Positions 13,476 to 54,309 of a stretch of DNA of 64,000 nt are shown piece after piece. Source of the stretch: Podarcis bocagei (Eukaryota); the NCBI GenBank assembly GCA_964188305.1, contig OZ076886.1. One strand, given 5' to 3'. The translations under genes and the position numbers were made by a program. How positions within the stretch are numbered: the stretch's first letter is position 1; every line of letters starts with the position of its first letter. The notes beneath the pieces are model-generated. The model had not been told where the DNA came from. It saw nothing but the letters and a program-made list of their open reading frames with translations, and ran no database searches.

Positions 13476-15066
13476 CTGCCAGGATCATCCAAGATTGAAT
13501 GAACAGTAGAAAAACAGGGAGGAAATTTAAATATGCAATCAGGCATTAGTTGGGACTCGTGGATTGCTGTGCACTAGAAATAAATTAATTTTACTCTGCT
13601 TTTATTAGACATCTGATTTATGGTTGTTGTTTTTTTTAATGGCGAAATTATTTATGTTAAAATGTATTTAATACAATATAGAAACGTCAATGAAAAGGAA
13701 AGGAGAAAATAGGGAATTAACGCTGCAGTGTTAAAATTTATAAACAAAGGATAGTTTTATCTTAATTTTAAGAGGATCATTTATATAAAAAAAAGGTTAT
13801 CACAGATCACTACATTTTTCAAAGAACATTGGATATGAGTTTACATGCAAATTTAACTTCATATATGCACCTGTATATGGGGGGATGAAATCCTGGCAAC
13901 ACATGAAGGCAAATGCACACTGACTACTTCGGAGTCAGAATTTCATTTTTTGGATTAATAAATGTGTGCTTTAAAATCCTAACAGGATTCTAAGCTGCTT
14001 TAAGAGTGGCAACTAAACCAGCTCTCCCTTTGCTGGAGAACTTACTCACTGAAAGGCACAAGTTGTGCCAAGACTTCTGGCAACATGAATAGTAACTGAA
14101 GCTGTATTCTTGGGCCCTGTTATGCATGCTTTAGTTCCTTGCATATTAAAGCATATGAACAACTGAACATCTATAGAGTCCTGACCTAGTCTGGGCAGTT
14201 GTCAATTCATTGGTTAATTTCTATTATTGGCTGTTTGGTACATATAATATGGCTTTTGCACAACAAGAAAACTCAAACTTCAACTCATCTTAGCCCACCT
14301 CTTAAATTAGAAACCTTTTATGTTGTAGTTATTCAGCAGGTAAAGAAAACTGGCCAAATTTTGGTGCATCCCACAATGATTTAATAAATCAACATAAAAT
14401 TATTAGTGGCAAACTGACTTCAAAGCTGAGGCATACCAGGTGGAGTAACCCAGACAAAAACACATTATATTGGAATGCAAAGTATATCTGCTTGGGGTTC
14501 TGTTCTTCTTCTTTTATTTTTGCAAGGAACAGAAGTAATCAAATTCTCTTATTGCAGATCTCTCCTGCAAAATCCATGTAGTTTTTACATTCTGACATAA
14601 TGTTTTTTCCATGGATTTCTCCACAGGTAATCTCCGAAACGTTACATTGGAACAGAACCAGAGAATATAATCTGACCACTGGTGGATACGATCCATAACT
14701 GAACTGCCTCTTTAAACCCCAGCCCAACTGAACCAGCATGTAAAGTGATGGTTAAGCAATTATGCCCATAGTTGTTTCATCAATCTTATACAGTTGAGCC
14801 CTATATGCATCTACTCAAAAGCATGTCTCATGAGGTCAACAGGATTTTACTCCCAGGTACGTGCGTAGGGGACTGTAGCCTTAAAGGTCTTTCCCTGTAA
14901 AATTATTTTTCTTTTTAGTGATATTTAGTTTTATTTTTGGGGGGTAGACAGTGGATTTGCCTTGCTCACACCCTATGGCATAAAGAACTAGAGGTGCAAA
15001 ACGCAGAGGGATGACACTTGGTCCAATAGGTCCCTGCTCAGAAATGTTTAGGCCACAGCTGCTCAC

Positions 15067-15173
15067 CTCTGCATGGTGCTCTTCGTTCTGCTGTAGGACT
15101 TCAATTACCAATTCCGCCAAGCGAATTGTATCTTCTAGCTTTTTGGCAGGTGTGACTAACCGACCTACATTTT
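15067..15173 (-). CDS. CADPS: CADPS exon (E)[35 protein letters not shown], 107 nt
   Basis: CAPS1 peptide; ctacag| and GAG|gtgagc. Confidence 0.97.
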
Positions 15174-15808
15174 CTGTAGTACAAGAACTTGAATTAAAAT
15201 GGAGTGAGACAGGATAGGCTCAATGTAAGGCCAACAGATTGGTTGCTTTTTTTTTTTTTTAAAGAAAGAACAGAAAAGAAAAATCCCAGGGTAATTAATA
15301 ATAGTAATTAAAAAGAAAAGAAAAGAGGAACCTCTACTTCATGCAAGGGTTAAAATGCTATGTAGTTAGTACTGAGCAAACCATAAAGCCACGTTTGTTG
15401 TTATACCATGAAAACAGTGCTCCAGCTTTGGATTTAAATATGCGGTACAAATTGTTTTACTTTGCAGTTGAGACGGTATCAAGTAACTACTTGAAAATAC
15501 ATTTCCTAGAGACAGCATCTTGGTCTTATCTGCATAGGGAACATCTGATTTCACAGTTTATGCATACATATGGTTGTGCTGCGCATCTCAAACACTGTTT
15601 GTGATTTTGAGTATTATCTAAACTGATCCAGAAATTAGGAATGTTAGAATAAAGGATTTAAGCTAATTCATCCCAGTTGACACCAGTGGTGTTACACCAG
15701 CTTACATCTACATTTGCATGTCACTACGGTGCTCACTGTGGCCACTTCAACAGGGGCTGATGGGAGCTGCATTCCAAACCACCTGGAAGGCATCAGGTTG
15801 GGGTAGAC

Positions 15809-16011
15809 CAGGGCTATTTTCAGCCGGAACTTGCCAGAACTCAGTTCTGGCACCACTCAGGTGGGCACCCTGAGCCCGGCTTTGGCTGGGGAGGGCGGGA
15901 TATAAATAAAATTTATTATTATTATTATTATTATTATTCTATGAGAACGAGGGAGGCAGTTATTGTCACATGGTGAGTTCTGGCACCTCTTTTTCTAGGA
16001 AAATAGCACTG
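15809..16011. mobile_element. hAT MITE carrying an inserted L2-type 3' tail (TTA)n
   Basis: TIRs cagggctatttt/aaaatagcactg; degenerate 8-bp TSD gggtagac/gggaaggc. Confidence 0.55.
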
Positions 16012-16272
16012 GGGAAGGCTGCATTAGCAAACTCTAACTATACCCACACCAACACCAACAGATCTCTCACTGAGCCTCAAGATAGTGACAAAACACAAGG
16101 ACTGCCAAAATGTGCAGTGCCCAGTGCTCCTAGTAGTTAGGTAGAAGAACGCCATATTTAGGGCACACTATATTACTGAGTTTGGGAGCTTACCCCTCTC
16201 CCCCCCCCCCCGTATGTATGAGGGTTATAATAAAAGAGGTTATCAATAACATTATGGTTATCCAGATAAACC

Positions 16273-17020
16273 TGGCAGAGGGCCTTTTCGGTAGAGGCCT
16301 CTGCCCTGGGGAACGCCCTCCTATCAGATGTCAAGGAAACTAACAACTATCTGACTTTTAGAAGACATCTGAAGGCAGCCCTGTTTAGGGAAGTTTTTAA
16401 TGTTTGAAGTTTTTAATGTTTGAAGGAAACCCATCCAGATGGGCAGGGTATAAATTAAATTATTAAATATCCAATTATGTTAAGTGATTATTATTTTTTT
16501 GCCTTTTAAACTGCAATTAATCCAGAATGCAGCAGCTAGACTGGTGACTGGGAGTGGCCGCCGAGACCATATAATCACCAGTCCTGAAAGATCTTCATTG
16601 GCTCCCAGTACGTTTCCGAGCACAATTCAAAGTGTTGGTGCTGACCTTTAAAGCCCTAAACGGCCTCAGTCCTGTATACCTGAAGGAGTGTCTCCATCCC
16701 ATCGTTCAGCCCGGATACTGAGGTCCAGCACTGAGGGCCTTCAGGTGGTTCCCTCACTGCGAGAAACCAAGTTGCAGGGAACCAGGCAGAGGGCCTTCTT
16801 GGTAGTGGCGCCTGCCCTGTGGAACATGCTCCCAGCAGATGTCAGGGCAATAAACAACTATCTGACTTTTAAAAGACAACTGAAGACGGCCCTGTTTAGG
16901 GAAGTTTTTAATGTCTGATGCTCTATTGTTTTTAAAATTCGGCGGAAGTCACCCTGAGTGGCTGGGAAAACCCAGCCAGATGGGTGGGGTATAAATAATA
17001 AATTATTATAAATTATTATT
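16273..17020 (+). mobile_element. L2-clade LINE 3' ends: two tandem 5'-truncated copies with TTA-rich tails
   Basis: QNAAARLVTG...LHWLPVRFRAQFKVLVLTFKAL-type ORF2 end; a related copy at 58286-58525 (-) and a tail at 52975-53058. Confidence 0.8.
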
Positions 17021-17565
17021 ATACAATGCCTTGGCTACTGCATCCCTTTGGGGCTGTACCTTCCACTCACACATCTGAACCAGCAGATATAACCACAAGC
17101 TTACCTGCAAGAATTTGTCTCTAGATGAAATGTAGATTCATCCCAAGCTTAATTTTCTTTTCAACAGCATTTTTTTTAAAATTATAACCTCCTCCATTTT
17201 AGAGAACCATATTGTGGACAACTGGAGCACTGCTCAATGAAACGGCATACTTCTCAATCATTTCATACTTAATTTAATTCATACAGATTCACATATCTCA
17301 TGCAAAATGTTATGCAACAACAATGTTATTTTGTGCTGACGTTGATATTTGAAAATGTTGCATATGTCAGACATTGCTAGACAAAAAAGGTGGACATTTT
17401 GAAACCAATGCTATTTACTAGAAGCGCTGCGCTAGGAAATTTCTCTTTTTCAAAGCCTACGGTCGAGACTACTTTCCTATGATCTAAACTAAGAGCAAAT
17501 TAAGGAGAAAAAGGCTAAACTAGAAAGATATATTTAATAAAAGAAAGGAAAACCATTACGGTTAC

Positions 17566-17670
17566 TTGGTGCTTGCTTAGGTATGCCTTTCAGCATCTGA
17601 TTTATCATGTTAGTCTGCGTTTGAGTGGATGGAGTGGGCCCAGCTGGGGGCTTGGGCACTGACGACCGAG
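17566..17670 (-). CDS. CADPS: Candidate CADPS cassette exon (A)RSSVPKPPAGPTPSTQTQTNMINQMLKGIPKQAP, 105 nt, phase 1-1
   Basis: Pyrimidine tract plus aacag acceptor, CAA|gtaacc donor; a GC-rich open frame inside AT-rich intron. Confidence 0.62.
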
Positions 17671-18473
17671 CTGTTCGTGAATGATGTAAAGAGACAGCAA
17701 AAGTAAAGACACATGTGACTTCATAAACAGTGACAAAAAAAGATGAAAACTTTTGAACGAAAAGTAAGCAGAAATGATAAAAGTACAAATGGAATAGCTG
17801 CTGTTTTGCTTATCGTCAACTCAAGTACTACACAATTATGACAACAAACATTTTTTTCTGAAGTCGACAGATTCCACTATGCTACAAGAATTCACAATCT
17901 AGGATGCTTAAAATTCAGTGCGAATGCTAATTGTTATTTCATGTAGCCAAGTGCAAAAAGCAGGATTTTAGTACAGTCAATTAGTTGTGTATGGTTTTTT
18001 TTTTAAAAAAACTTTATCTGCATGTGTCAAATGTGAAATAGCATTGCATGCCTTTTATACCCATATCGTGGCAAGAATTATTGCCTACTATGGATTTCTT
18101 CTAGATATTGTGAGACTTATTAACTGAAGAAAAGCAGAAAGTACAGAAACAAATTGTTTTGCAATGACTGCATTTTGAAAAAAGTAAATAACACCATTCT
18201 GGGCTAAAAGGATTGCTATACAGCATTCTTTGTGCAATTTAAATATGTACTCAAATCTCTCGCTTTCTTAAAAAAAAAATGTGTGGCTTCTGATTGTTTC
18301 CAGCTCATTATTTTCCACTTGGAATTGTAGTGGCTTTTATATTCTGGGTTGAATCATATATAAAAACTTGCCAGCTCTATCAAATATGTTACTTTGCTAT
18401 TCCAAATGTTAGAATACTGCAAATCAGGACTTGACCCATCTGTCATATAGTTTGTGATATCAGCCTAGGGGGA

Positions 18474-18476
<3 letters not shown>

Positions 18477-18540
<64 letters not shown>
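18477..18540. repeat. (TA)n microsatellite
   Basis: Direct. Confidence 0.98.
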
Positions 18541-18545
<5 letters not shown>

Positions 18546-18745
18546 TCTGTATGCACACAACAAATTCTATATGATGAATGTACCTCTCCTATAGTTTCTG
18601 TTATGTTCAAGATCAACATTATAATAGCCAAAGCACTTCTCTAAACAATTCTGTCTGCAAGGAGTCTGGCATATTTATCTACATGGTTTGTTGCCAGAAG
18701 CCCTTTTCTTTTTGCTTGCATTTTCCAGAGATGGAAAAGAATGAG

Positions 18746-18747
18746 GA

Positions 18748-18795
<48 letters not shown>

Positions 18796-18805
18796 AGAAA
18801 GAAAG
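18746..18805. repeat. (GAAA)n microsatellite
   Basis: Direct. Confidence 0.95.
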
Positions 18806-19239
18806 AACCTAATTGTTTAGCTCTTTACAGGAAGATGATTTCTGGTAAATTGTAATTTTGAAAGTGTTCTAAATTTTTTATAAATGGCTGTATGTTCAGG
18901 GCAGTAGAAACACTTGCCTCTTTGAAGCACAACTGTAAGGGAGCAATCCTATATACATGAAGCTGGCATAAACTTACACCAGATCCAAACTCCGTTCAGT
19001 CATGGGGCTACTGTCTACTGAGCTGACCTAAGTCTGGCAGAGGGGAAGCAAGTCTTTAAAATACGGTTTGGGTTATACCACCCTTTATAGCTTAACTAAT
19101 GCTAGGTTGCCAGGTCACATGACCAAGCTGAATGGTCTTAGGATCTGGCCTAAGTCCTCCCCCCACTTTGGTCCCTCCCACATCACATCCCTGGAGCGCC
19201 CTTTCTTCAGGGCTTACAACAGCTTAAGGTCTGTCAAGC

Positions 19240-19604
19240 TCAGCTCAGCCAAGGATGAGGGAAGATACTCCAGCGTACCTCCAGCTGAGCTGAGGGTGAG
19301 GAAGTTAAGCTGTTGGATCACTGCCTTGTCATGGCAAAGGGACTTGAATAATTCAGAGAAGCTATGAGCTATGCCGTGCAGGGCCACCCAAGACAGACAG
19401 GTCATATTGGAGAGTTTTGACTAAATATGATCCACCTGGAGCAGGAACCAGCAAGCCACTCCAGTATCCTTGCCAAGAAAACTCCATGGACAAAGACAAC
19501 AGGTTTGCCCAAACTGCAGGAGGCAGTAGAAGACAGGAGTGCCTGGCATGCTCTGGTCCATGGGGTCATGAAGAGTTGGACACGACTAAACGACTAAACA
19601 ACAA
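19240..19604 (+). mobile_element. RTE-BovB internally deleted derivative (5' region joined to 3' end)
   Basis: ggatcactgccttgtcatgg...ccactccagtatccttgcc 5' motif followed by ggtccatggggtc...gacacgactaaacgactaaacaacaa 3' end. Confidence 0.75.
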
Positions 19605-22600
19605 GAAGCCTGGCATCACCAGGAACCTCCTGGCTCAGCCAGAGATCTGCTGGATACTAGCCTGCTCATTCCAGTGGATATTGCTTTAGGATTGCTCCCT
19701 TAGGCAGCAATCCCACACAAACTTTGCCTGCTTGGATTCCACTGAAGCCAATGGGATTTGAGAAGCCTGTGTGAAGGATGGTATCCCAAATCTTAATGAA
19801 CCATCCATCCCATTCTAAGAGGTATACACTCTGTCACACAAACAAAAGCCAAATAATCGTACCCATAATGGTCAGCCATAACCATAATGGGTGACCTGAA
19901 GGTCTTAGTTTTCACGTTCCCTTTTGATATGGTGACTTTTCCCACATGGCAATCTAACAAGGCATGTTTGGGATGACAAATATGGGGAGGCCTGTCGGGC
20001 CAAGTTGCTGCTCTAAGCACATAGGCCCTCCCTTGTCAATGAGTGGATATCAGGGGCAAGAGCAGTAGCTGGATGGCTGTCAGGGTCAGGATGGAAAAGA
20101 AGGAGAAAGGATCTGGCTGCCACTTCACATATTGCATATATGCATAGAGGAATCTCTCCTGAAGTGCCCTACTGAGCCAGAACCTCAGTCCACATTCCTC
20201 ACAAATAATGTACAAAGAACTTGGAAAGCTTCACTGAGCTTTATGACATTTCTGAATGCTCTTTATAACATTTATGTTAGGAATACCTATACAACTTATG
20301 TGACTAAATTTCTTTCTCCCTTTTTCTGAAATGGTTCCCCTTTCCTTGAAATGAATCCATCAATTCATGTCCCAAAACATCTTAGTCTAATTTCTCATGG
20401 GCTAAGGAAGGGAAGGGATACTAGTAAAGTTTTTTGCCTTATGCTAAACACATTATTTCTGATTTTGTCTAGTATTTCCCTTTGTTGGGATATTTTCTCC
20501 CCATGATGCTATGGGTCAAGGGGGCAGAATTTCACAGAACCACTGTGAGTCAAGAAAAGATTGGAAATGGAAGCCTTTTTCCTGCTGTAGGCCTCTTAGG
20601 AAACAGCCATCCTATCTAGCATGCAATCTGGACAACTCATAATCTCTGATTTATAGGAAAAAATATCCCAGGCTAGTCTTGGTTAAAACCCTTTAAGGGC
20701 ATATTAAAGCTCACCTCAAAAGGAAGAGTGAGCTTTACTTGTCTTTCTGAGTTGGAGAAGACTTGCTGGCTTCCATGGCCTCCTGAATTTCTGTCCTTAT
20801 CTCTGTATTTTGCACCCATTCAGTCTAATGGAACAACATCACACCACTGTTTAATATGGAAATATTTAAGATGGCCACAGGTGGGTAATTTTTCTGGACA
20901 AGGTTAGCTTCCTTGGCTCCGCTGGTGTGTTTGCACTATGCTGACCTTCAGACCACTTCAAGCAACCCAGCTGCCAGGAAGCTAGTATAGCAACTTTGCC
21001 TCCCCTGGCAAGCCTCTTCTGCCTGTGTGTGCTTGTGTGTGTCTGCCCCCCAAAATTAAACTAAAACAACGAATGCTGATAACAAGAGCAATGTTTGGAA
21101 AAGGCTGTCGTTCCCTTACACCAAATATATGCATGGGTCAATTATGTCGCTGCAGACAATTTTCATCTGACCTGTTCCCATTGAGTTATGACGTGAATGG
21201 CATTTCCTCAAAGGAATACCAAAGCCAGAGGACAATTGCACCCACGAGACACGGCTTAGCTGTGCAGCAGGCCCTGCAGTAACTCAACTCTGCACCAGCC
21301 TTAAATATGTTCCAGCTACTGAACTTGCCAGCAGCTGCACATTTCTGCCAGTTGCTGCAGACCTAGACACCTACAGTGACCTAGATGAAAAATATATTTC
21401 AGAGCTGATTGGCATTTAAATCCCGCATCTGTCAAACACGCCTGGGTTGCGCAACTGCAGTTGGGGTGTGCTTGTTTGTGAGTGCCCGCGCACATGAGTG
21501 GGTGCCCAAAGCAGAAAAATATGGGGAAGAGAGTGAAGCAGAAAAAAGGGTGGGGAGAGCGAGAGCGAGAGGAATAAAGAAAGAAAACAGCGTAAAGCAA
21601 AGTGGCCATAGCAGCTGGCCTTATCAAGTATTTTTTTTAAAAAAACAAAACAGCTTAAAACACATGACCTATGGATTGGATTGTGCAGTTCTCAGCGCAT
21701 TGATCCACTACTCTGATTTTTCTTTTTTTGAAATGAAATTGTAAAAACAAAAGGAAATAGGAAGAAGTATTTTTGAAAGCAACAAGGGAGGGATCTGTGC
21801 ATATTTCCCTACAGCTCCGCAACATGCACCACAATAGTAATTAAAATACCCCTGCTGATTCCCTACTGATGCCAACAAGTGCATATAGATGGCTTCTGCC
21901 AAACTCTGGCATGAGATGTAATTGCTTCATGCTAGGTTATAAAGGCAGTGGGCGGAACCAGGAACACTGTCACACTACAAAAGTCCAAATTCCAGGACCA
22001 CCCTTTCAACTTTCAGGATTACATTAACAGCATTTTTTTTTAAAAAAAAGATTTCTTTTTTATTATTATTTATGCATGTGTGAGTACTAAAGAGACCTGA
22101 TTCGCTCTAGCTTGGGGACTTAGGGACAGAGCAGGGCTGGCTGGCATTTGGATGGGCAGTGTCCCTGCAGAGATCAGTTTGTAGGAATTAGCATCTCCAT
22201 ATTCTACATGTCTTTTGTAGCTGTTGTGATTTACCTGATTGTAACAGCTCAAAAGAGGGCCGTTATAATCTCAGAAACAATAGTGGCAGGGTAGACATTC
22301 CCATATGGAGGTATTGATTCACACAATGACTCTGAGCTGATTGCCCTGCTGAGATGCTCAACCTCTTCTCACATCCACTGCACAGAAGTGAAACTCTCAG
22401 GATGGTGTGAAAAGCAATATATTTGCTCAGTACAAGTACCGAAAAGCTGGTATCATACGGGATAAATCAATACCAACGGTGGGTATGAAAACACAGGAAA
22501 ACTTCAATACCATTTAGAAGCTATTCCACTATCTGAAAACTGCTCATTTTTGCCACCTTGTGGATATTTTTCTATGATGATTGGGTATAATCTACGGTGC

Positions 22601-25180
22601 TGCAGCACTTTCTGTCTTTACAGTCTAGGAATTACTTTATCTTCTTTGAAACAATAAATAGAATCAAGCACACATTCTGTCCACACCGTGCCACTAGTCT
22701 CATGCACAACTCCTGTCCTGCTTTCAGGAGATCCCTTCTAGCTGGACTCCTGGTTGGAATCACAAGCAAACACTCAGCTCTGGGGGAAAAGACCCCTGGG
22801 AAGAGAAGGCATCTTGTAAGTTTGCCTGTGACTTATAAGAGAGAACAAGCAGGGAAACATTAGCTCCCTTTAGGCTCTCAGTGCTTTCTGTTTCTGATGG
22901 CTTCCTGGAACCCAAGCCTTCAGGTTCCTTCAGCATATTAGAGATGCAACAGCTTCACTGTTAGGTGTATCATTGCAGCATAACCAGTTACTAGTGTAGA
23001 ACAATCCCAGATGCTTTCTGGAGAACTCTGTAGCTATACACTCCTTATATTCAACTTTAAAGTGTTTCACACCCTTACTTCCACTCTTTCATTGCTAGAG
23101 ATTCCTTGGATAGGCTGCTGAAACAGTTCTCCAGCTGCAACAACTGGCCACTGGTCCTCATACTCACCCTAAATGGAGACGGGATGATGGAGGAGGCTGA
23201 GGACACCTCTGTCTGCCCTGTGCAAATGTATATTTGTTGCCTGGTAACAGGCTCAGGCTTCCTTTCAGCTTAATTGCCATCCCGGGCTGGATGTGGACCC
23301 GCATATGCGTGTTGCTCTATGCTGCCGAGATTGACCGACAGCATGAAAGCAGCATCCATGTATGTCCCTCTTAAAATGGGATTTTTTTTTTAAATGGCAG
23401 GAGGGTTGAATGGAGATTGTCCTGGGGTTTCAAATCCTGCCACCTCCAGTGAAAAGGATCAGATAACAGGTGACTGGAAAGACCTCTGCCTAAAATCATG
23501 GAGAAGGGGCTAGAGAAAGAAATAGTCTTGTCCCAGGACAAGTCAGCCTCCTTTGCTCCTATGGGGAATTCCTCTGATATGAAAGAATCCACTCTTTCCC
23601 TCACGTGGGGCTTCAGTTGCATGTAGTCTGGCCACTACTCAACACTTTAACGATGTGGAAGTAGATTGTTTTTGTTTGCCTTCTAAAAGGTTTAAAGATA
23701 TTTCACAACGTTGTGTTAGAAGTGGCAATAACCATCTCTTTGTTTGCAAAATGCAAGGCGGTTATGGGTTGATTGCGCTTTACTAGTTACAGGTTCAAAT
23801 AACAACATTTTGGTTTCAATATCTGTTCCATTGTTCTTACTTTCATTGCCTACTCCATTTAACATGCAGGTTGTCTTTTGCAGCTAATCAACACCTTCTG
23901 ACTACTCCAAACAAAATATATTCTTTTACCAAATCACATTAGGACTATACATGTACAAGGAATGCTCTGTTTTATAAGCTGTAATATGGTATGAATTGCC
24001 TTAAGCCACTTACAGCAAATCAAGAACTATCACTAAGAACACTCTTAAAATCTACCTAACTTTGGCATGTCATATTATGCTTCTCTAGCAGAGTAAGATA
24101 ACTGCAGTGAAAATTAGTGAGAAGGACCCTTTAGTATTGAAGTTATTCAGATATCTGTGCAGAACTGTACCTATAGAAATGTACCTAAACAGACAATGTA
24201 TTTTAAAATTCCATGTGCAAATATAAATGAATCTTTTGCATTACGTTTTATGATATGCTAGAATTCACTGGAGCTTGAATTCTTCTACTGAGTGATGTTC
24301 TACATCACATGAGAATATTTCTGCTCACATGACTGTACTTCCCCCACTTCTCATTCTCTTTGCAGGTCCCCAAAATCTACTCTGGAGGGTTGGGGGATCT
24401 TCTGGAACAGATTACTAGGAGTACAAAGGAGGCACATTGGGGAGGAGAGGAAGGGAAAGTTCCATTGTGAAATAATAAATCTGTATTGCAGCTTGGTGGA
24501 CAACAATGGATGTCACCAATTGACTTTAGAGTGACTTTCATGTGGTTGTGGTTTTAATACCCACCATGTTCCTTTGGTGTCAATTTGAGGTGTACTGCAT
24601 CATGATACTTTCTGAACCAGAAAGCAAGCAAAACACAGTTTAATTTGAAACATGGACACAATGGATGCAATCCGGACCCATTTTTTAAAAAGTGGGAGGA
24701 AATATATAGAATGCCAGAAAAATGTAACTGCAAGGTTGTTAGTGTAGCTCAAAGACAGCTAATCCACAGATATAACTTGCACATAAGATACGCTGAATAA
24801 CCAAAATATGGAGACTATGTTACCTATCACAAGGGACTGTTGCCAGTGACAATCCCTTACATGTCTGGTGAATATTCAAAAATATAGAGATGTACCAGTG
24901 AACCATGTTCACTGGACATGTTCAGATCCACTCCATAATTCTGGACAGTCACAATATACATGTGGCATGGGTACTATTCCCTCGTGGTTGTCTCCTTATT
25001 TTGCTAATGTACATTGATGCATGATGCAGATGCAGCCTCAATTGTACTTTATGGATGCATCAAGTTGATGTATGTAAGGCTGCTTGTCCTTGTCAGAGCC
25101 ACCATTAGTCATAAATATCTGTTTAAATTCTGTATAAATCAAGAGCACTGGATGCCCTTGATATTGTGACAAAATGATTA

Positions 25181-25534
25181 CAGTGGTGCCTCGCAAGACG
25201 AAATTAATTCGTTCCGCGAGTTTTTTCGTCTAGCGAATTTTTCGTCTTGCGAAGCACGGTGTCGGGAAAGTTTTGGAAAAGCTTCAAAAATCACCAAAGT
25301 CTTCAAAAACCTCAAAAAAGGCTACCACACCGCGTTCTATGAGTTGCTCCTCGAAGTCAAGTCGCAACTGTATTAACGGTGTTAAGAAAAAGGAAACAAA
25401 CTTGCAAGACGTTTTCGTCTTGCGAAGCAAGCCCATAGGGAAATTCGTCTTGCGAAGCAGCTCAAAAAATGCAAAACCCTTTCGTCTAGCGAGTTTTTCG
25501 TCTTGCGAGGCATTCGTCTTGCGGGGCACCACTG
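25181..25534. mobile_element. Tigger/pogo-like MITE, copy 1
   Basis: TIRs cagtggtgcctcgcaagacgaa; TA on both sides. Confidence 0.88.
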
Positions 25535-26499
25535 TACCTAATAATATTGTTTATGCAAAGGGAAGGGTAGGCAGTTTTAGTTATTTGTTGTGTTAGGGGG
25601 CGACAAACTGTTCAATTAAAAGAATAGATTTCCTAGTATTTTAGTATAGTTCATTCTGGGGTGAGTGGAATTCTTGTATGAAAAAATGAGATGCTGAGCC
25701 ACTTTGTGGTAGCGTCTCTCAAAGATGACTCTGATGCAATCCAAGGCAGAATTTGCAACAAAATTATGCATTGCAGAAATATTTTCTCTCTCTAAAAACA
25801 CTTCAAAATCCAGACAATCTGCTTTCACAGAACATAAACGAAGGACTCAATAAAAATAAAAATAAATAAATTAAATTAACAGTTCAGATCTTATGAAATT
25901 TCAAATGAATTTTTTTTATACCCAGAAGTCATGAAAAAGGTGGCATGTCTGACAAATTTTTACTGAATTATTTTTCAAAGTTTTTTTTAATCTGAACTGT
26001 ATTCTTGTTTCATTACATCACCACATTACAAACAAAAAATAATAATACAAGAAACATGACTTCTCTCTGACTGTATTGTTAGTTACACATTAACAGGAAA
26101 ACAATTCAACCCGAATAGGGTATTAAACAGAATATATGAAAAACAAAAATGAGATTAAGTTTAGGTATCAAACAGTGGTTTGAACAGAATGCCAGATTGC
26201 TAATAGTACTGAGTTCTAAAATGTCCTCTTAGGGTTGTTTTTGTAAACCTTTTTCTTGATTAAACTGTGTCTCGTCTCCTAGTAAGATGGCACTGAATTT
26301 CTGTTCTACTAGATCTACTTAGGGGAGAAGGAGAACACTCATTACGGGAATTAAGACAGCACAAATTAACTCCTTAAGTATTACTGCAACTCCAACTTCT
26401 CTCTATAAAGGAGTACATATCTTAAGGAGCTACGGAAAGGAAAACAAAGATCAATAAAGACTCAACAATCCTAGCAATGTATAATATACAGTTGTTCAC

Positions 26500-26517
26500 C
26501 TGCATCCTTTTGATTCT
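26500..26517 (-). CDS. CADPS: CADPS 18-nt microexon (E)NQKDA
   Basis: Encodes the ENQKDA of CAPS1; long polypyrimidine tract plus tag|, CAG|gtgaac. Confidence 0.92.
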
Positions 26518-27400
26518 CTATATGAAAGAGAGAGAAGGCAACAAGGAGAAAAGAGAGAGAAACAAGAACAGATATGCAGGATTAATGAGCAAGTGGATCA
26601 AAATGCCCCCCAGTTATGTGTGATATATGACATTCAAAAAGAAAGTTGCCCAAATCTCTCCCACCACCCAGAAGCATGGGCAATCATCAAAAACGACTTG
26701 CTTTGCCAAGATAAAATGTTATGTTGTACAAAGAAAAACTGGGGTTTAGGTGGTTTAAGCTCTGAGCACGCATACTGGCTATTAGACTGGTAAAACGAAT
26801 ATACACCATTTGTCCTATTCAGAGCTCTCTATAGAGGAATATTCAGGAAAAAAGATCCTTGGAAAGCACTCTGTTTGAGAGAAAACAGACAAGAGACGTG
26901 GAAGATCTAACGTACAGGGAAGACATTTTTCTGCGGTCATATGCACAGATTGTAAAGAACTTTTGAAACACATACACATTAGGGAAAGATAGAGATGACT
27001 CTTTCCCAGTGTCTTTTTTTTCTGAACTCTAGCTCATTGCTCCCCCATGTAGTTGCTGTCTTTTGATTGTGTACCAGTGACAAGTGTTTACAAATTGGGG
27101 TTACACAGAAGCAAAGTAAAAATGCATTCAGGTCACAGACAGAAAGAAGAACTGAAAAAACTTACAGACAAATTGGAGTTCGTCACAAACAAAAACAGCT
27201 GATTTTTTTCTAAGCTTTTTCTTTTCTTTCTTTTTTTTAGGCTGATAAAAAGTGACTGGACTTCTCACACTGGGACTTTCACAGACAGAAGCAACAGACA
27301 AAGCCAATGCTAAAAGACTTGAAGCAAGGAAAGTGAGTTGGTTTGGCTCTGGATTGTACTGAAGTAATGAAAACAGAAAAGAGTGAAGACGGTATGGAGA

Positions 27401-27556
27401 NNNNNNNNNNNNNNNNNNNNNNNNNNNNNNNNNNNNNNNNNNNNNNNNNNNNNNNNNNNNNNNNNNNNNNNNNNNNNNNNNNNNNNNNNNNNNNNNNNNN
27501 NNNNNNNNNNNNNNNNNNNNNNNNNNNNNNNNNNNNNNNNNNNNNNNNNNNNNNNN
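27401..27556. other. N gap; others at 32840-32968, 38406-38553 and 53059-53188
   Basis: Runs of n. Confidence 0.99.
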
Positions 27557-29705
27557 AGAGGAAAACTTTACATTAGCTCAAAAGGAAAGTAGCTGTAGAG
27601 TATTTTGGGATACACACAGGAAAAAATAATAATAATTAAAAAAAAAAAGATTTAAAATTGGAGGTTTACTGGATTAACCATTCAGCATGCTCATGAGTCA
27701 CAAAAGAGATTGTGACCATGATTCTAAAGGTTTGTTCTGAATTGTTTGCAGGAATATAATGGTCAGAACGTCATGAATAGAAGGAAATAGAATTTGATTG
27801 ATTTAAGGCTCCAAGATACTAAGGAGTTTAGCCTTCAGTATCTAAGGCTTTCACAGGTATTTCTTCATAAACATAGCCTCAAGCAGCATTGCTGTGAAAT
27901 TGTTTCTTATCTTAATTTTAATGCACTCAGGCTAGTTAGACCTCGAAGGAGGCATTTGGTTTCCAAATTGTAGACTCCACTGCAGAAATGGTCAAACAAT
28001 GATTGTTTTTAAGTTTAAAAAAAAAAGGAGCAGAAAAAAGCGAAGAGGAACTCAGAGTGAGCGGACTATGCTCATGAGAGAAAACCTGAAGCATGCAGCT
28101 TGCGGATGTTGGGTTGTTTTGAATTAACAATCCCAGCATGCTCTGAAACTGATGCAACCACTTTTTATAGAGGCAGCATAGAAAAGTGGCTGAACCAACC
28201 ACGAACAAGGAAGGAGAGAAGCAGAAGAGAGCAGGTAGTGTGGGATGAAGTACTTCTCCGAAAACAATAGCTGGAATTCAAAACAAAACAGGAAAATAAA
28301 ACAAATAATAAAAAAGTTTGTTGCTTCAAAGTTTCCCAGACCTAAAAGTCACAGTGCCAAAAAAGAGGGCAAGGTAATTAAAGACAACCAAGAAGAATTG
28401 AGGCACCAAAGGAAAGTACACGCTAACTGTTCTACGTTTTGGGAAATGAATGCATTTTTACTTACAGATCATAAAGTTTGTTTTTGCATAGATATATCTG
28501 AAAGAAGAGAGCAAAGCTTACCGACAGAGTTAGTGAGCGTTACACAGAGACCTTGGGAGTCCAGTGTCCATTCAAAAGGAAAGTCACAACAACAACCCCA
28601 AAACTGCCTCTGAACTGGAGTTCTCCCATGTCCTCGTGCAGCATATTTAAACATTGAATTTTTTAACAGAGTTCACCAATTAAAACCATTCTGTGAAGTC
28701 GAGTGCTTTGATAAATTGCTTGATAGCACAGCGCTCAAGAGACCTGCGTTCCTTCTCTATTTTCATCGCTCATTACCAAGTCAAGAGTTGATAAACATCC
28801 TTTTAGTGCCCAATTCTTAAGCGTTTCTCACTGGATGCATAACAATGAATTCATTACCACTGGTACACAATTTGCATTGTCAACGTGGGGGGGGGGACAT
28901 TGAAAAAGAGAGGAGGTGTATAATCTACAGACCCTGGAAATATGGGGCATATCACAATAATCCAGTCCTTATGACATGACCAGCAAGGACTAAGGAAAGA
29001 AAAATAATAATTGAACGGTGATATTGTTTCCTCTAGCATTATTATTCAAAGCAAACGAGAACATTGCTTTATTTAGCAAAGCTTCATGGCTCACACATGA
29101 CAAGAACCCCAAATCCACAGCACATAATTCAGTTTAAACATCTAACAGCAAGGCATTTGTCGTGTTGTGTAGGAGTTTCAAATTACTGTACAGCAGCCAA
29201 AAAGGTAACAATGAAAACTGATTAATGTGTAAAGATCTATCTGCATGTATAGAATTCCTGCCAAAAGCATATCTTCAAGCAAGTTTAAAAATGTCTTTTT
29301 GATAGCTACATGTGTCTCTGGTCACTAGTTGTTATTCTTCCCTAACGTAAAAGGTCAATAATATCAGCTGTGGCGAATTTAGAGTGACAAGAATGAAATC
29401 TGATGCAAGTGTAGGGCCAACTGATTTGACAAGATCTGCTATGCATAAAAGGGGAGGTGGCAAAACATTACCCAGGAAAAATAAATAAATAGACATCCTA
29501 AGCTGGCTTACAAATGAGTGTGCACAGTTAAAAATATTTAATTTCTGATATTTCCATTGTTTCATGAACTCCACTGTCACAAGCAATTAGCCGTGTTTCC
29601 TATTCCAGTTACAAAACATGACATACTATGTTGATCTCAATGGTTGTTTTCTAGGAAAACAACACAACACATATGAATATTGTACAAGTGACCAAACATG
29701 CTTAC

Positions 29706-29744
29706 TCTCCCGCAAAGTAATTACCCTGCGTACCATTTCATGTT
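29706..29744 (-). CDS. CADPS: Candidate CADPS cassette exon (E)HEMVRRVITLRE, 39 nt, phase 1-1
   Basis: Strong ctctc(t)n-aag acceptor, AGA|gtaagc donor, open frame. Confidence 0.5.
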
Positions 29745-29908
29745 CTTAAAAAAAAGAGAGGAAGATTTTGCCCTAGCCTTATTTATCCTGCAAGCTATGG
29801 CATATTTTTTTAAAATTTATTTTCTTTTTCTTCTTTTTTTAAAAAGCAGCTTAGTCGTCTCACTGAAACAGGAAACCAGCGTTAATTTTAGTAGCAAAAT
29901 CGCCTTAC

Positions 29909-30032
29909 CTTCAATTTTGGCATACTCTGAGAGCCGTGTATAGTTAGTCAATGCAGCTTGCTCTAAGCATTTACGGATGACGGTCTTTACCTCCTCTTGA
30001 GGGACTGGAGTAACTATGTCTTTCATCAAAAC
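29909..30032 (-). CDS. CADPS: CADPS exon [41 protein letters not shown], 124 nt, ends phase 1
   Basis: CAPS1 peptide; tcaag| and AAG|gtaagg. Confidence 0.97.
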
Positions 30033-30866
30033 CTTGATATAAGAAACACTGATTTGTTGTGTCATCTTGAAATTAACTGCTTTTGTTTTCAATTTCACCC
30101 ACCTAAAAGATTTCGAAGGGTTCACAGTGCCCTTTGTCTCCCTCTACTGGTTAGAACACAGGCAGCAACAGCATTGCCCATTGCATCTTGGGAACTATTG
30201 AACCTGATCACCCTGGCCCATGGTTCTAGGTGTTTTGCGTTTTGAGGAATGTAAAACGTGAGGAACGTGAGGAAGTGGGCTGCTAGGAGTGGAAATCCAG
30301 CAACATCTGGATGGCACTATATTTAGGCTACCTGTGCATGAGATGTTAAGATAAAATGATTGGTTCACAAGGTTCATTATTATTAGATGTACGGATTAAT
30401 TGCACCAGCCCTAAAGTACTTGTTCAATTAGAGCTGAGTTCAATAAGAGTTCAGGTTTTTCTGCTAGCAGGATAAAACTATGACTTTATGGCACAGAAAA
30501 TTGCAATTAGAATTCTAGGTGTTATAAAATATCCACGTGTACATGAAGCTTTAAGCTAGTGTTGTTCATAGAGTCAGGAGAGGCCAAGAGGGAACCCAGC
30601 CCAACCAAACCCACCCATGAAATCTGGACCACGGTGTGTCCCAAGTAGAGAGCAGGTGTAGTGAAGAATGCTGCTCAAATGAAACGACACTCACAAACAT
30701 GCCAGGGGATGAAAAGCCCCTTCATTTCCAATATGATTGGAAGGAAAATGGCATCCAGACTCCACATATATAATCGAAGTCAATATAAATTCTGCTGAAT
30801 GAAAAGAGCCAAATATGAGAACTGGATTTTTTAAAAAAACCAACCTTTCAGGACCCTTACGCTTAC

Positions 30867-31573: not shown

Positions 31574-32985
31574 CTGGAGGAGAAAAGCTATGAATAAGTT
31601 GCATTTTACCTCATGACTTTTATGAATCATCAGCACTGTAATGCATCACATTATAGTCAAAACAATTATACAAATAAATAAGAGTATTTGAATGTTGGGT
31701 TTCCAGACTTGGATTACCTGAAATCAGTGGTACCAGAGAGCCTGAATAGCAGCTGTGTTTTTTTGGGGGTGGGGAACCTGTGGTCCTTTAAATATAATTG
31801 GGCTCCAGCTTCCATCAGCCCCAGACAGCACAGCTAGTGGCTAACAATGACAGGGGTTATAATTCCAGTTATATTCCTGCATTGCAGGGGGTTGGACTAG
31901 ATGACTCTGGGTGTCCCTTCCAACTCCACATATGATACCTGGAGGGTCACAGGGCCCCCATCCCTGGAGTACCCCCATTCACTTCAAGGCCACTGCTAGT
32001 TCCTTGCCCAACACTGGGCATCTCTGCTGGGTTGAAATTCTTGGATAGTATTCATTGCAGCCTCAATAAAGGCACAGGGCTAAGGCAGTAAATTGTGTTG
32101 CCTCTAAGTAACTCATGTGGGAGGCAAATCTCTGAATATCATATATTTCTCCATACCTACAAGACTGCCTTTCCCCATGTGAACCTGCTCCTAACCTGAG
32201 GTTACCATCTGAGGCCCATATCTGTAAGCCACCTCTGGATCAGGTCTGCAGGGTGTGTGAGTGGGACTCGCACCAGTTTAGATCCTGGCCTACTTGCTTT
32301 CAGCTATTAGGATCAAAGGTGTGAACGATGCAGTGTGAGGAAGTACAAACGCAAGGAGGAGCAAGGTTTTTCTCCTGTGGAAGTGTCTGTGCTTCTTTTG
32401 AAAGCAATCGAAATAAGCAGAGTTCTTCCTACGTGCAGAATGCAGTTCTTTGAACAACGCCTAGTAGTACCAAATTAATTATTTTACCTCAGCAAGTAAT
32501 GCGTTGCTGTGAAACTCCCACCCATGTGCAAAGCAGTTAAGCACAAGTTGACTTAAATCTGTCAGTTTGCATTTCTTAGTGCAGAAAGTATTGATCTGGT
32601 GTGTAGGGATCTTTCCTATTCTACTTAATTCAAGAGGGTTCTGGAAGCTTCTTTGTATGAAAGAGATAAGCAAAAGGTCCTGATGTTTGGGTTATTCCCT
32701 CAGAGAAGCTGAGTACAGTTGGTTTAAACTGGTTCTGTTATCTCTTTCAGTCATGGTCATGCTGACTATAAAAGTAGGGCTGGAAGGAGCCTGGGTTTCA
32801 CTTTCTCTTTCTATCGCTTTTTCTTCTGGTGTGGCATTCNNNNNNNNNNNNNNNNNNNNNNNNNNNNNNNNNNNNNNNNNNNNNNNNNNNNNNNNNNNNN
32901 NNNNNNNNNNNNNNNNNNNNNNNNNNNNNNNNNNNNNNNNNNNNNNNNNNNNNNNNNNNNNNNNNNNNGAGACCAGCTAAGTTTG

Positions 32986-35555: not shown

Positions 35556-38500
35556 GCATAGAGTTTCAACTCACAGTGCTTGGAGACACTGCTCAAAAGG
35601 CCAAATGGAAGGCCTCATTGTAATTTCAAAGAAATATGCAAGCACAGAACCTTAACTGCTCAAAATGAAGGGCACTGCTAATTTTCAAATCAACTGCTTA
35701 TTTTAGAGAAGGTCCGTTTAACTAAAAGTAATTCTCAAACTAATTAGGGACGGCAGCCTAAGATATAGGAAATATTTGTTTACTGAGATAAATTAAAAGG
35801 TTTGAAAGACAAATGCCAGGCAAGTACACAAGTTATGTTGTTGATGTGATAATTGTAGCTATCACTTGATAACCTGAACGTGTGAAACTGTTACCGCTAG
35901 TTATTACATGATCAAGTTATTACAGATCATTGCCTCTTGTCAGGCACTTGCCCAATAAGGGAAAAATCCAAGATAGGAGGTGATAAGCCCATCATGTGTA
36001 GTTGCCCATCTCATGTTGTCAAACTATTATTAAACGAAATGTGTGATTTTTCCCTGATTGCAGCAATAACCTATGAAGTGTGTTACTGAAAATGTCTTGA
36101 CATGAGTCTAAATGCAGAAGAAAACAAAATGTGGCTCAAAAACTTGTTCTTTTCCTGTACTCCTTTTGTTTTAAAGACATCAATTTAGAACTTATGGTGA
36201 ACCCTACATGCTTACTACGGAGTGAGCGGCTTCTTCCAAAAAAGACAAAATGGTAACCACAGACTACAGATGGCAATGGCTGACACTCTGATTCTGAACA
36301 CATTGCAGGAGAAAGTACTTCCAATTGTGTTTGGGGTCAGAGCACCAGACTGCTGCTTATTTTGCTGCACTTCACAAAACACTACCGAGCCACTCCTTTT
36401 GTAGGCTCAAGGAAGTTTACTAGAGCAATAAAACTAGCACTGCGCTGAAATCTGCTGCCCAATTTCTTTAAAGCTTTCTTCCCCCACAAAAGTAGCCTCC
36501 ATTTTTTTCTGCAGAGTTGAGCACACTTTATTGGTGACTGAGGGTGTTGGGTATATTTTTCTTTCCATTCAACATTTCCCCAGCACTCCCCTGTCATGGC
36601 TGCCTGTGCTTCCTGATCTGAAAAAGCCCTATGGGAGCAGTCTTTTATTGGCAATGAAAGGCCATAACGTTTTCCCATGAGCTTTGACGGAAGCATGGGA
36701 AACTGGGAGACTGGCTCCCAAGTACCTGAGATAAGAGAGCTTGCCACCCTCCCCCCATGAAAAATCATTCCTTTAACATAAAAATATACATAAAATAATA
36801 ATCTTTCTGCATTGAGTCATTGAAAAGTGAATACTTTAAAAATAAACAGACCAACAGCTGTCAGAGACCTGGTAGGCAGCTTCCCATACATTGCCAAGAA
36901 TATTATAGTGTTTTCAGGAATGATGGACAACAAGGGGGGGCTTAAGAATACAAACCACTTGAGAGATGGCTTGCTGAATGGAAGAAAGTAGCGTACGTTC
37001 ACAAAACACCAAAGCAATCCTGAAAGATAAACACACAACTGCCCTATGCCCCACTCACGACAATTTCACCAACATTTTCTCTCTCCTTTCTTAAAGTTCA
37101 AATGCAATACCCCTTTTTATTAATTGAGAGAGAATAGTTGGAAAAAAGAAAAGAAAACACAGACTAATTTAATCAGAATACTAAATATGTACCTATATCT
37201 GTATCTATTTGTGAAACAAAATAAAAAAAATCCTTCCAGTAGCACCTTAGAGACCAACTAAGTTTGTCATTGGTATGAGCTTGAAGGAATTTTTTTATTT
37301 TGTTTTGACTACAGCAGACCAACATGGCAACCTACCTGTAACTATATCTATTTGTGAATTAGCTCGGGTCTCCCAAGCTGCCTGAGAAAAAGCTTTATTT
37401 TACCAATAATAAAGAGAATATTGGAGTACCTGAAGGAGCTTTCCATTGAGAGACCCCTGAGAAGAAGGTGCTGGCAGTGGGGAGTGCTGATGCCTTGCTG
37501 GCCTCACCCTTAAGGCCTGTATACTCCCAAGCATTTTCAGGTACATCTACTGCTGTTTGAACGCATGGGGATTATAGTTTCCAGTGCCTCCCAACCCATT
37601 TTTTTTTTTGATGCGGGAGCTACTAGAAGCTAGAGTTGCAACTAAATTGTAGCAGCATCAGAAAGCTTCCACAGGTCAGTAGCCAGTGAGGGGACAGGAC
37701 AGAACAATTGGGTAGAATCACTGCAGCAGCTCCATGCTGTTGAAGTGACCGGGTCTGGATCAAGTTCAGTGTGGGCCAGCGATAACTGTGAGAGTGGGTC
37801 AGGATCTAGCAGAATGCAGGTTGGCTCTGCATAACCCACCACCTACCACCACTGGTGGTGTTTTGGGGCTTTCTGCTGGTTTAGGGTACCACCAGGGGAC
37901 TTCCTGGATGGGTGCATCCAAGGAATTATGCTTGACAGCTCAGCTGGAAAAATGGGATGCTTCAACTCAGTCCAACCCCACTTGCCCAGTCTGGTATAAG
38001 ATGGTTGGTGTGTGTGTGTTCACTGCACTGTCACTCATTACCTCATGTGAAAACTACTTGTGAAAAATACTATGTCTGCATAGCTGTCCTTACAAAGTAT
38101 TTTTTTCCTGTGTGTATTCCACTGTACCTGTGAGCAGAAACAGTGTATTTATTATTATTATTATTTTAAAAAATGTATTCACAACACTAGACGGAATTAA
38201 TAATAATAAAATATCACAGCTGGCTTCTGTGTATCATGTAGCAACAAACTTCAGACAATCTACAGGTCAACTGTAGCCATTTTTGGAGCCGCCTGGATGT
38301 CTGGAAGGGCCTGCCAACTAAGAGCCATCACAACTGCAAGGACTTCCTTTCTCAAACAGCTGTGGACTATATTACATCTGACATGACGAGCATCTCTTGA
38401 ATCTANNNNNNNNNNNNNNNNNNNNNNNNNNNNNNNNNNNNNNNNNNNNNNNNNNNNNNNNNNNNNNNNNNNNNNNNNNNNNNNNNNNNNNNNNNNNNNN

Positions 38501-40646
38501 NNNNNNNNNNNNNNNNNNNNNNNNNNNNNNNNNNNNNNNNNNNNNNNNNNNNNAACCCCCCATCTTTAGCCATGTCACAAATAATAATACTTCCAATGTT
38601 TTTTGTCAAATTCCAAATACTACCACCCAGCTGCACATCTTTTGGAAATTTATGAGTTATGTTAATTCTTGTTGCTCATCTCCCCAGAAGCTGAAGCACC
38701 ATGATTTCATTAATTAAGTACAAATCTGTAGACGGCACTATGATTATATAAACATAAATTAAGAGCCCTGCACTTATTTTTATATACTTGAAGGGAAATG
38801 GAACCATTGTCATTAACGATCATATTATCTCAATTTATATATGTGTGCTTCCTCCCACCTTCAAATTAATGTTTGGGGCATTCTTGCTCTTAGGATTTCC
38901 TTTTCTCTGCTGCATTTGGAACATTCTCTTGTTGCAAAGCAAGCAGTCGAAGGCAACAGAATATACCAGTAATCAAAAGGCATTATTGGTGGGAGAAGAA
39001 ATCCACATTGCTGCTGTAGATGTGTGTGTGTTTAGGTGCCACTTCCGAGACATTTCAATATTTGATGTTTACAAGTGTAATCACAGGTTTCTGCAGCTTG
39101 TGCAATTTGTATTTTACCATTTTATGTCCAATGATTAAAAAAAGTGTACATAATGTCACATTTAAATGTAGTTATGTCGTGCTTGGATCCAGATCAGGAA
39201 TACAAAACATGAGGAAGGACAGAAACAGTGCAAAGAAACGTCAGACTTGTGGTGTCTGTAAATCTCTATGTAGTCACACAAAGAATTGCAGACATGTTAC
39301 AGTGCAGGCACCTCTATATGAATTTAGGTCAACCTACAGAATTGGAAATATCTCAGTCTTGAACGGTAGCAGATTCCCCCCGCCCCCCCATTTTGATACT
39401 GTTTGGATTCTGCTAGAGAAATTAATAGGGCATAATAGTACAGATGGGTGTTGGGGGGTGGAGAGAAAAAGGAGGTTGGGATAGTGCCAGGAAAAGGTGC
39501 CTTTATGATGAGATATTAAAACCCTAAATTAGCTGTTCATAGTGTGCATTTTAAAATATTGTAAACACATTACACGAGAAGCTAAAATGTCCCTGTCTAC
39601 TCCTAATATTACTCATTGACTAATTATTAATCAGCCCCCAAAGAAATCTTTCTGAAGTGAGTTGTCAAGTTTAAAAATAAATGGTCTCGTGGCAAAGACA
39701 ATATTCCCCCCCCCCAACTGCTTCTTTGTGCAAATCGCAGGGTTAATTATAAATTATAATTAGGACCAGAGGTCCTAAGGCCACGATTTCTTTCTGGAAA
39801 CCCCACCTCCCCCACCATGCCCTTTTCTAATTGTACACGGTGCCTCGGGGGCTAGTTATGCTGCTCAAGCAAATATATCAAAATCATTTCTTTTAAACCA
39901 AGGAGTACTATACGAGGCAATAGCATGCATTTGTGTGCAATTATAAACACATATTATAGCTCTTTGGGGTTAATCCCTTTGACATTTGCCTGTTCCAGTG
40001 TGGCTTTGAAATGAACACAGTGTCTTTTACACCTTTCATGATAACCTCTCCCGTTCTTGGGAAAAAATGCCCATTAGTAGGCACGTACAGCCTGATAAAT
40101 ACCTGATCCGAACTGGTGAAATTTAAAAGCTCAAAGCCCTCCTTTCTTTCCTTTTTCTACACCATGGGCCCTTGAAAGTGTTTTGCGGTGCAGAGGACTT
40201 ACAATACCTGTGACTATTATGATGCAAAGAGCATGTCCAGATGGCTGCCTGGCTGTAAGCCCAGGCGTATTGTGTTATTACATAACCATGTCACATCAGA
40301 AATGCAGCTGTTACCGGCAAAGGGCAAATTGAGTGCTGCTCCCAACATGCATGACCACACCTGGTTTCATCTACTGGTTCTTGCCTGTTCTGCTGCAACC
40401 ATGCCATCACGTCACATGGGAAAACCTTGATTGAGACGGTATGAAGGGGCTAATGTGCATACTTGGCCATTGCTGTATTTTTGTGGCTAACATTGGCAGA
40501 GCTATAGATCTAATTTCTCTTGCATTGCTCAAGGCTGACATCCACTACTTGGGTGAGCAGCATGTTCATTAGTACCTCTCATGGAAACTCTCTTATATAC
40601 AAAGGTCAAGTTAACATATGTAGAACCTTGCTGGATCACGCCAAAT

Positions 40647-46460: not shown

Positions 46461-46604
46461 CTTTTGGGCTCTGGAGGTGGCTGGGGTTTGGAATCTTTCC
46501 TCTTTTTGGACTCCTTTTTGGAATCCTTTTTTGGCTCTACTTCGACGGCTGGGGGATTATTTGCCACTGGCAGTATGGCACCAAGTATCTCTTCCATTTT
46601 TTGA
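46461..46604 (-). CDS. CADPS: CADPS alternative cassette exon (S)QKMEEILGAILPVANNPPAVEVEPKKDSKKESKKRKDSKPQPPPEPK(R), 144 nt, phase 2-2
   Basis: Open and frame-preserving; acceptor caaag|, donor AAG|gtaaga. KKESKKRKDSK resembles, from memory, a mammalian CADPS alternative insert at this position. Confidence 0.82.
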
Positions 46605-53964: not shown

Positions 53965-54309
53965 CAGTGGTGCCTCGCAAGACAAAATTAATTCGTTCTG
54001 CGAGTTTTTTCGTCTAGCGAATTTTTCGTCTTGCAAAGCACGGTGTCGGAAAAGTTTTGGGAAAGCTTCAAAAATCACCAAAAACCTCAAAAAAGGCTAC
54101 CACACCGCGTTCTATGAGTTGCTCCTCGAAGTCAAGTCGCAACTGTATTAACGGTGTTAAGAAAAAGGAAACAAACTTGCAAGACGTTTTCGTCTTGCGA
54201 AGCAAGCCCATAGGGAAATTCGTCTTGCGAAGCAGCTCAAAAACCGCAAAACCCTTTCGTCTAGCGAGTTTTTCGTCTTGCGAGGCATTCGTCTTGCGGG
54301 GCACCACTG
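53965..54309. mobile_element. Tigger/pogo-like MITE, copy 3
   Basis: Near-identical to copy 1 apart from a 9-bp indel; TA flanks. Confidence 0.88.

Follow-up and report, generated by a model that had tools for sequence, protein, structure and literature searches.

CADPS, which encodes the vesicle-priming factor CAPS1, lies on the minus strand of a 64,000-nt stretch of Podarcis bocagei DNA (GCA_964188305.1, contig OZ076886.1; hereafter the window), and the junction between its YAKIE and ENVGR exons very probably houses an array of three genuine phase-1 alternative cassettes. These are e16a, an 18-nt microexon encoding ENQKDA, and an exon rich in proline, serine and threonine (the Pro-rich exon). 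The array is already present in public annotation, and none of it is new as sequence annotation. One element of the same 14.7-kb intron may be new, a 32-nt stop-carrying unit that is a plausible candidate for a poison exon with its own branch point. A combinatorial array of phase-1 cassettes had been proposed here by the first-pass annotation of the window. The annotated isoforms do combine cassettes at this junction, but only two of the six proposed exons belong to the array and three are chance look-alikes, while e16a, the main known cassette, was missed because it falls in a run of unread bases (N run). For readers of CADPS isoforms, the consequence is that one junction accepts three independent in-frame cassettes.

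The gene was identified by tblastn with P. muralis isoforms, in which every exon of the window was 100% identical to P. muralis CADPS. Consistent with orthology to CAPS1, which primes dense-core and synaptic vesicles, the P. raffonei protein P0283 carries the C2_CAPS, PH and MUN models (PF25341, PF00169 and PF06292). Comparisons were made with a close relative that is 97.9% identical overall (L001), a non-lacertid squamate assembled from a public read set (L002), the skink Lerista edwardsae (L006), a bird or turtle contig (L004) and a frog contig (L003). Isoforms were retrieved with the single upstream exon (29910-30032, minus strand), which returned mainly short read-through fragments and a partial king cobra CADPS (P0007), and then with P0007 and P0270, which yielded about 180 full-length or near-full-length vertebrate CADPS isoforms. 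The peptide check covered 329 database proteins, of which 311 were screened for candidate peptides and the inserts of the remaining 18 were printed. Splice sites were scored with a crude position matrix, and the scores are approximate.

Seven of the eight possible cassette combinations are annotated between EYAKIE and NVGRL among the vertebrate isoforms. The insert may be absent, as in P. muralis X11, or may consist of e16a (GKKREMYEHPVF...MDLTI; about 90 of the approximately 180 isoforms), of ENQKDA (many isoforms), of e16a with NQKDA (many isoforms), of ENQKDA with the 35-aa Pro-rich exon (geckos, snakes, birds and P. raffonei X3), of all three (P. muralis X33, P. raffonei X1 and X7, Heteronotia, Euleptes, Crotalus, Corvus and Tyto) or of the Pro-rich exon alone (Hemicordylus X1 and X2, Paroedura X2). 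The letters of the window reproduce all of the annotated junction codons. With a slash marking the exon border, G/AG gives E and C/AG gives Q before NQKDA, G/CT gives A before RSSVPK, and A/AA gives K and C/AA gives Q before NVGR, where E is also possible. The exons of the window are 100% identical to those of the RefSeq models of P. muralis and P. raffonei (X1-X33) and of Ensembl A0A670J8N6, where the three cassettes and their combinations are modelled. These models differ from the first-pass candidates in giving the Pro-rich exon 111 nt instead of 105 and in lacking the 39-, 30-, 32- and 144-nt segments discussed below.

Because the length of every cassette is a multiple of three (3n) and each enters and leaves in phase 1, any subset would splice in frame. 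The split codon at each junction would be recoded by the upstream exon, so that NQKDA would follow E or Q and NVGR would follow E, Q or K, and the outcome would be the addition of 0 to about 67 residues just N-terminal of the crystallised DAMH/MUN core. The N-terminal edge of the MUN/DAMH region is where the variable segment lies. The Pfam MUN model covers residues 856-1331 of P. raffonei X1, in which the last residue of AKIE is 880 and the first of NVGRL is 948, and the solved CAPS1 DAMH structure (6a68) begins at 945, three residues ahead of NVGRL. An AlphaFold2 model of residues 770-1085 of P0283, built from a 22-row alignment, had a mean predicted local distance difference test score of 38.8 and is unusable for judging a loop.

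In the mouse, e16a of Cadps is a 69-nt, 23-aa cassette directly after exon 16 that is conserved across vertebrates; it enhances CaV2.2 currents in nociceptors, and e16a alone alters CaV2.2 coupling and pain behaviour (PMC13232204, a 2026 preprint). The Podarcis exon shares the junction after ...YAKIE, the 69-nt and 23-aa lengths and the 1-1 phase, while function has been shown only in the mouse and the exon falls here in the N run. The e16a peptide is invariant in about 130 vertebrate isoforms, Podarcis included, and corresponds to residues 833-855 of P. muralis isoform P0176. It was found in none of the six frames of the read letters of the window, and from the AKIE exon to the microexon the only letters left unread are an N run of 156 nt. 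In the non-lacertid squamate and the skink, both represented by uninterrupted contigs, exactly 156 nt separate the flanks of this run, and e16a sits at offset 68-136 of the interval in each. The flanks are 89% and 88% identical up to the border in the non-lacertid squamate, and the flanking high-scoring segment pairs in the skink are 87.5% and 83.1% identical. Since e16a is absent from the read letters and collinear in two squamates, it most likely lies inside the N run, at an expected position of about 27489-27421 on the minus strand; the flanks are collinear with those of the two squamates and the stated length of the run is probably exact. No candidate exon spans the run, and the 144-nt candidate begins 91 nt downstream of it. 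The most important exon of the junction is hence invisible to anyone who scans these letters for exons.

Three further N runs of 129-148 nt occur in the window, at 32840-32968, 38406-38553 and 53059-53188, and the constitutive P. muralis exons were all matched outside them. Because the run in the studied intron has the exact orthologous length and most likely hides a highly conserved exon, these too may be exact-length masks over conserved elements.

The ENQKDA microexon, which the first-pass annotation had named without giving coordinates, is real and could be located in the window (Table 1). All 18 nt are identical in the non-lacertid squamate and the skink, and the preceding 60 nt are 95% identical in the former. 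Microexons of the SRRM4 type are 27 nt or shorter and 3n, with a strong pyrimidine tract and a UGC near the 3′ splice site. Compared by these sequence features and not by a fitted model, ENQKDA fits this type, being 18 nt and 3n, with a pyrimidine tract of about 55 nt and a TGC about 20 nt before the AG. It thus resembles the SRRM3/4-dependent neuronal microexons in its size, long tract and UGC. A literature search on the string ENQKDA gave no relevant match. Neuronal microexons have been described in unc-13 and in unc-31/Cadps, both MUN-domain genes (PMC12287369), but the published Cadps ones, a 9-nt microexon encoding GLK and an RBFOX1-dependent one at HHAE/AFAWW, sit at other junctions.

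The 105-nt segment proposed by the first-pass annotation is likewise a real exon, with a translation identical to that in P. muralis P0166 and P0312 and in P. raffonei P0270, P0276 and P0283. Its first-pass form is 6 nt shorter than the Podarcis-annotated one, which extends to a gtaatg donor. In geckos, snakes, a cordylid and birds the exon ends at the 105-nt position (...P-K), and in the skink it is 105 nt long and 96% identical, with the frame kept, within a 1.4-kb block of about 85% identity to the skink. Orthologous exons are present in geckos, snakes, a cordylid, birds and one frog, in which the exon is shorter; a word search found none in mammals or turtles, although such a search needs shared 5-residue words and the absence is weak evidence. 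Literature searches retrieved no paper describing a sauropsid 35-aa Pro-rich cassette. Exon 22 of mouse CAPS2 is also a proline-rich alternative cassette in the MUN/MHD region and is brain-specific (PMC1853102), but it belongs to a paralogue, follows the junction after ...ESWEPV, is 120 nt long and is not homologous to the 35-aa exon.

Conservation varies along the intron. In 250-nt bins, identity to the skink is 0.80-0.94 over 29600-26350, with three bins at 0.74-0.79, falls to 0.35-0.6 over most of 25600-18850 and returns to 0.75-0.95 over 18350-17100; in the region of the ENVGR exon it is about 0.8. The non-lacertid squamate gives the same pattern, with one 100-nt segment at 98% against 91% for the AKIE exon, and more than 1.1 kb of the intron can be aligned to the bird or turtle contig, at 83-90% identity. 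The intron surrounding the cassettes is more conserved than the coding exon. The 3.3-kb deeply conserved block around e16a and the microexon most likely carries their splicing controls. A search of 15000-30100 against Rfam was empty at E values of 0.1 or less, and the block is thus not accounted for by a known RNA gene. The constraint that the first-pass annotation had suspected over 26-30 kb is borne out by cross-species identity, but self-BLAST does not bear on its argument from transposon scarcity, since this stretch is free of internal repeats like most of the window and is not singled out. Pfam matched nothing on seven of the eight open reading frames of at least 90 aa that overlap the intron, which gives no transposon-protein evidence either way.

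Three GCAUG motifs, one of them a full UGCAUG, lie at 28096-28141 and 27690 on the minus strand, are conserved in the non-lacertid squamate and are possible Rbfox sites. GCAUG occurs four times on the sense strand and five times on the antisense strand and is not enriched.

Several points weigh against reading the junction as a spliced array of three cassettes. The isoforms are mostly Gnomon or Ensembl models, and the co-occurrence of cassettes in a single molecule is modelled, not observed. The splice sites of the Pro-rich exon are weak by the crude matrix, and the donor chosen gives 111 nt in the Podarcis models but 105 nt in other taxa. What the N run contains is assigned by position only, and the conserved block could be non-coding sequence with no part in splicing, such as an enhancer.

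The 32-nt element was among the segments of the first-pass annotation. It carries a TGA and shifts the frame: with the split junction codon taken as the first, the TGA comes tenth (bases 27-29 of the element), the length is not 3n, and the TGA is kept in all comparators. The element is identical at 32 of 32 positions in the non-lacertid squamate and the skink and at 29 of 32 in the bird or turtle contig. A consensus branch point, CTCACTAAC, is identical across species, with the branch A 32 nt from the AG. CACTAAC and CACTAACT also lie 32 nt upstream of the AG, the latter without any difference between the window, the non-lacertid squamate and the bird or turtle contig. Over its final 15 nt (GCTCTCTTCTTTCAG), the pyrimidine tract with its AG is identical between the window and the bird or turtle contig and differs by one base in the non-lacertid squamate, and the GTAAGT donor with the next 24 nt is identical in the bird or turtle contig. 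Branch point, pyrimidine tract, AG and GTAAGT are thereby retained in the window, both squamates and the bird or turtle contig. A scan of 3.6 kb for AG..GT pairs that score well in the window as well as in the non-lacertid squamate, e16a being masked, left three conserved pairs: the 32-nt element, ENQKDA and a closed 158-nt pair. A conserved GGTAAG (28523-28518), which resembles a 5′ splice site, precedes the element's AG by only 24 nt and may act as a competitor. A 33-nt match in the frog contig, to 28530-28498, was taken as chance, since it is located upstream of the AKIE exon.

If used, the 32-nt unit would insert a stop, making the transcript a target of nonsense-mediated decay (NMD) or the source of a truncated protein, so that a stop-carrying output of the kind the first-pass annotation had anticipated is plausible through this element. 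We tentatively suggest that it is an unannotated, sauropsid-conserved poison microexon with a competing motif, which could tune CAPS1 dosage by alternative splicing coupled to NMD (AS-NMD) or gate e16a in neurons or endocrine cells. Ultraconserved poison exons acting through AS-NMD are familiar from splicing factors and from SCN1A (exon 20N). The 32-nt unit is like them in being short, frame-breaking and stop-carrying, and in its 100% identity in the non-lacertid squamate, against 91% for the AKIE exon. It is unlike them in the competing 5′-splice-site-like motif 24 nt upstream, and its inclusion and NMD sensitivity are putative. A literature search combining "CADPS" with "poison exon" found nothing on this locus.

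A reading of the element as regulatory only is nearly as likely as that of a candidate poison exon. The 32 nt and their flanks could well be a conserved non-coding element, either a splicing enhancer or silencer of e16a, for example a decoy pair that holds U1 and U2, or a transcriptional enhancer. High identity spans about 800 nt (28925-28050) and so reaches well past the 32-nt unit, and conservation alone is no proof of splicing; this weighs against the poison exon. The GGTAAG, being so close to the AG, would block that acceptor, the 32-nt peptide is in no protein model, and the three conserved GCAUG motifs fall within 600 nt upstream of the N run, although their lack of enrichment over the antisense strand tells against their weight. 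What argues for an exon is that its full signal set is conserved, in the bird or turtle contig better than the exon body, and that the element is one of only three good conserved AG..GT pairs in the stretch covered by the non-lacertid squamate.

Another reading, in which the 32-nt unit would be an alternative exon that codes for a stable, shortened CAPS1 ending in ...YAKIE-DISMQKQTL and lacking the MUN and C-terminal domains, in the manner of the short CAPS2d-f isoforms, is unlikely. In its favour, all four species share the position of the stop, and short isoforms of mouse CAPS2 end in unique exons (PMC1853102). However, the substitutions in the bird or turtle contig alter two of the nine residues while the splice signals are perfect, which suggests constraint on the RNA and not on the peptide, and no such protein is present in the databases searched. 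The stop also lies far upstream of many exon junctions, a position from which NMD is expected.

As for the remaining segments, the first-pass annotation was correct that five further AG/GT-bounded segments exist besides the microexon, four of them 3n and open in phase 1. AG/GT borders, 3n length and an open phase-1 frame are common to ENQKDA and the 105/111-, 39-, 30- and 144-nt segments. Caution is needed, as open AG..GT segments are common by chance in a long intron. At permissive thresholds that admit all five candidates, the sense strand of the intron contains 709 AG..GT pairs of 9-250 nt. Open 3n pairs number 46 in phase 1, compared to 41 and 59 in phases 0 and 2 and to 32-37 on the antisense strand; because there is no phase-1 excess, five such segments are uninformative alone. 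Strict thresholds spare only three pairs, which are the 39-nt candidate, the ENQKDA microexon and one segment of 78 nt. The peptides of the 39-, 30-, 32- and 144-nt segments are in none of the 329 database proteins, which include about 15 lacertid isoforms.

Conservation across species, which the first-pass annotation had named as a check, separates the segments: splice sites are kept for ENQKDA, the 105-nt exon and the 32-nt element, but the frames of the 39-, 144- and 30-nt segments are lost, and these three are not exons. The 39-nt segment has a good acceptor and a gtaagc donor and stays open in the close relative, from which it differs by two substitutions, both amino-acid-changing (5%, compared to 2% overall and none in the AKIE exon). 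In the non-lacertid squamate and the skink it is effectively unalignable (38-39% identity), the skink interval being 46 nt long with a stop, and it is unaligned in the bird or turtle contig. The 144-nt segment keeps its AG and GT in both squamates but has non-3n insertions and deletions in the non-lacertid squamate, and in the skink it is 130 nt long with in-frame stops. The 30-nt segment has almost no acceptor (score -6.3, no pyrimidine tract), is 29 nt long and thus frame-breaking in the bird or turtle contig, and falls on the 32-nt element's branch point. A model of six or more phase-1 cassettes, the 39-, 30- and 144-nt segments included, that build a hypervariable loop is most unlikely: its appeal is that all are AG/GT-bounded with four 3n and open, that the 39-nt acceptor is strong and that the 144-nt borders persist, but the 46 chance candidates are equally good, the three frames fail as described and the peptides are missing from every protein checked.

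Table 1. Features of the CADPS junction in the window
Feature	Coordinates	Strand	Description
Constitutive exon ...LSEYAKIE + G	29909..30032	-	Phase-1 donor AAG/gtaagg; 100% identity to P. muralis CADPS (tblastn); no difference from L001
39-nt candidate	29706..29744	-	Rejected as conserved exon; lineage-specific AG..GT segment
30-nt candidate	28522..28551	-	Reread as branch-point region (CTCACTAAC, branch A at about 28530) plus GGTAAG
Pyrimidine tract and AG of the 32-nt element	28498..28521	-	
32-nt exon-like element	28466..28497	-	Phase-1 reading D-I-S-M-Q-K-Q-T-L-stop
N run	27401..27556	.	Likely host of e16a; collinearity with L002 and L006
144-nt candidate	27166..27309	-	Rejected as coding cassette; conserved intron, downstream of e16a, whose A-rich middle is not conserved
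ENQKDA microexon	26500..26517	-	18 nt, phase 1-1, donor gtgaac; many annotated isoforms
Pro/Ser/Thr-rich cassette	17560..17670	-	105 nt (17670-17566, next codon K) or 111 nt (to 17560, ...APSNQ)
Constitutive exon (E)NVGRL...HHAE	15067..15173	-	Phase-1 acceptor, starts AA AAT GTA GGT; P. muralis tblastn

Other splice features of the gene were also seen. At the next junction, HHAE/AFAWW, lies a 9-nt microexon, GGGAAAGAG (GKE; 13475-13467, minus strand), with the borders ggcag/ and /gtatgt, and it matches HHAEGKEAFAWW in P. muralis X33 and in Crotalus, Corvus and Tyto isoforms. Mouse primers used in an RBFOX1 study flank this junction (PMC13067610). The final 45 nt of the studied intron (15218-15174, minus strand) are open, in frame and 96% identical in the skink. 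Ab initio models from the king cobra (P0007) and Lerista (P0165) translate them, with a weak implied acceptor (-3.4), and the segment is probably a conserved 3′ splice-site region and not an alternative acceptor. Further upstream in the gene, a Lys/Pro-rich exon of 49 aa (SQKMEEILG...PPPEPK; 46460-46606, minus strand) is present in P. muralis P0166 and skipped in X14 (P0176), and is another alternative cassette of CADPS.

Within the less conserved middle of the intron, two blocks (21201-21912 and 23841-23969) retain 78-85% identity to the skink and contain no conserved exon-like AG..GT pair, making them isolated stretches of conserved non-coding sequence. Self-BLAST and near-identical translated strings also reveal an interspersed repeat that contains an internal tandem unit of 16 nt, in copies at about 25270-25600 and about 54050-54400, the former being the main recognisable repeat inside the studied intron.

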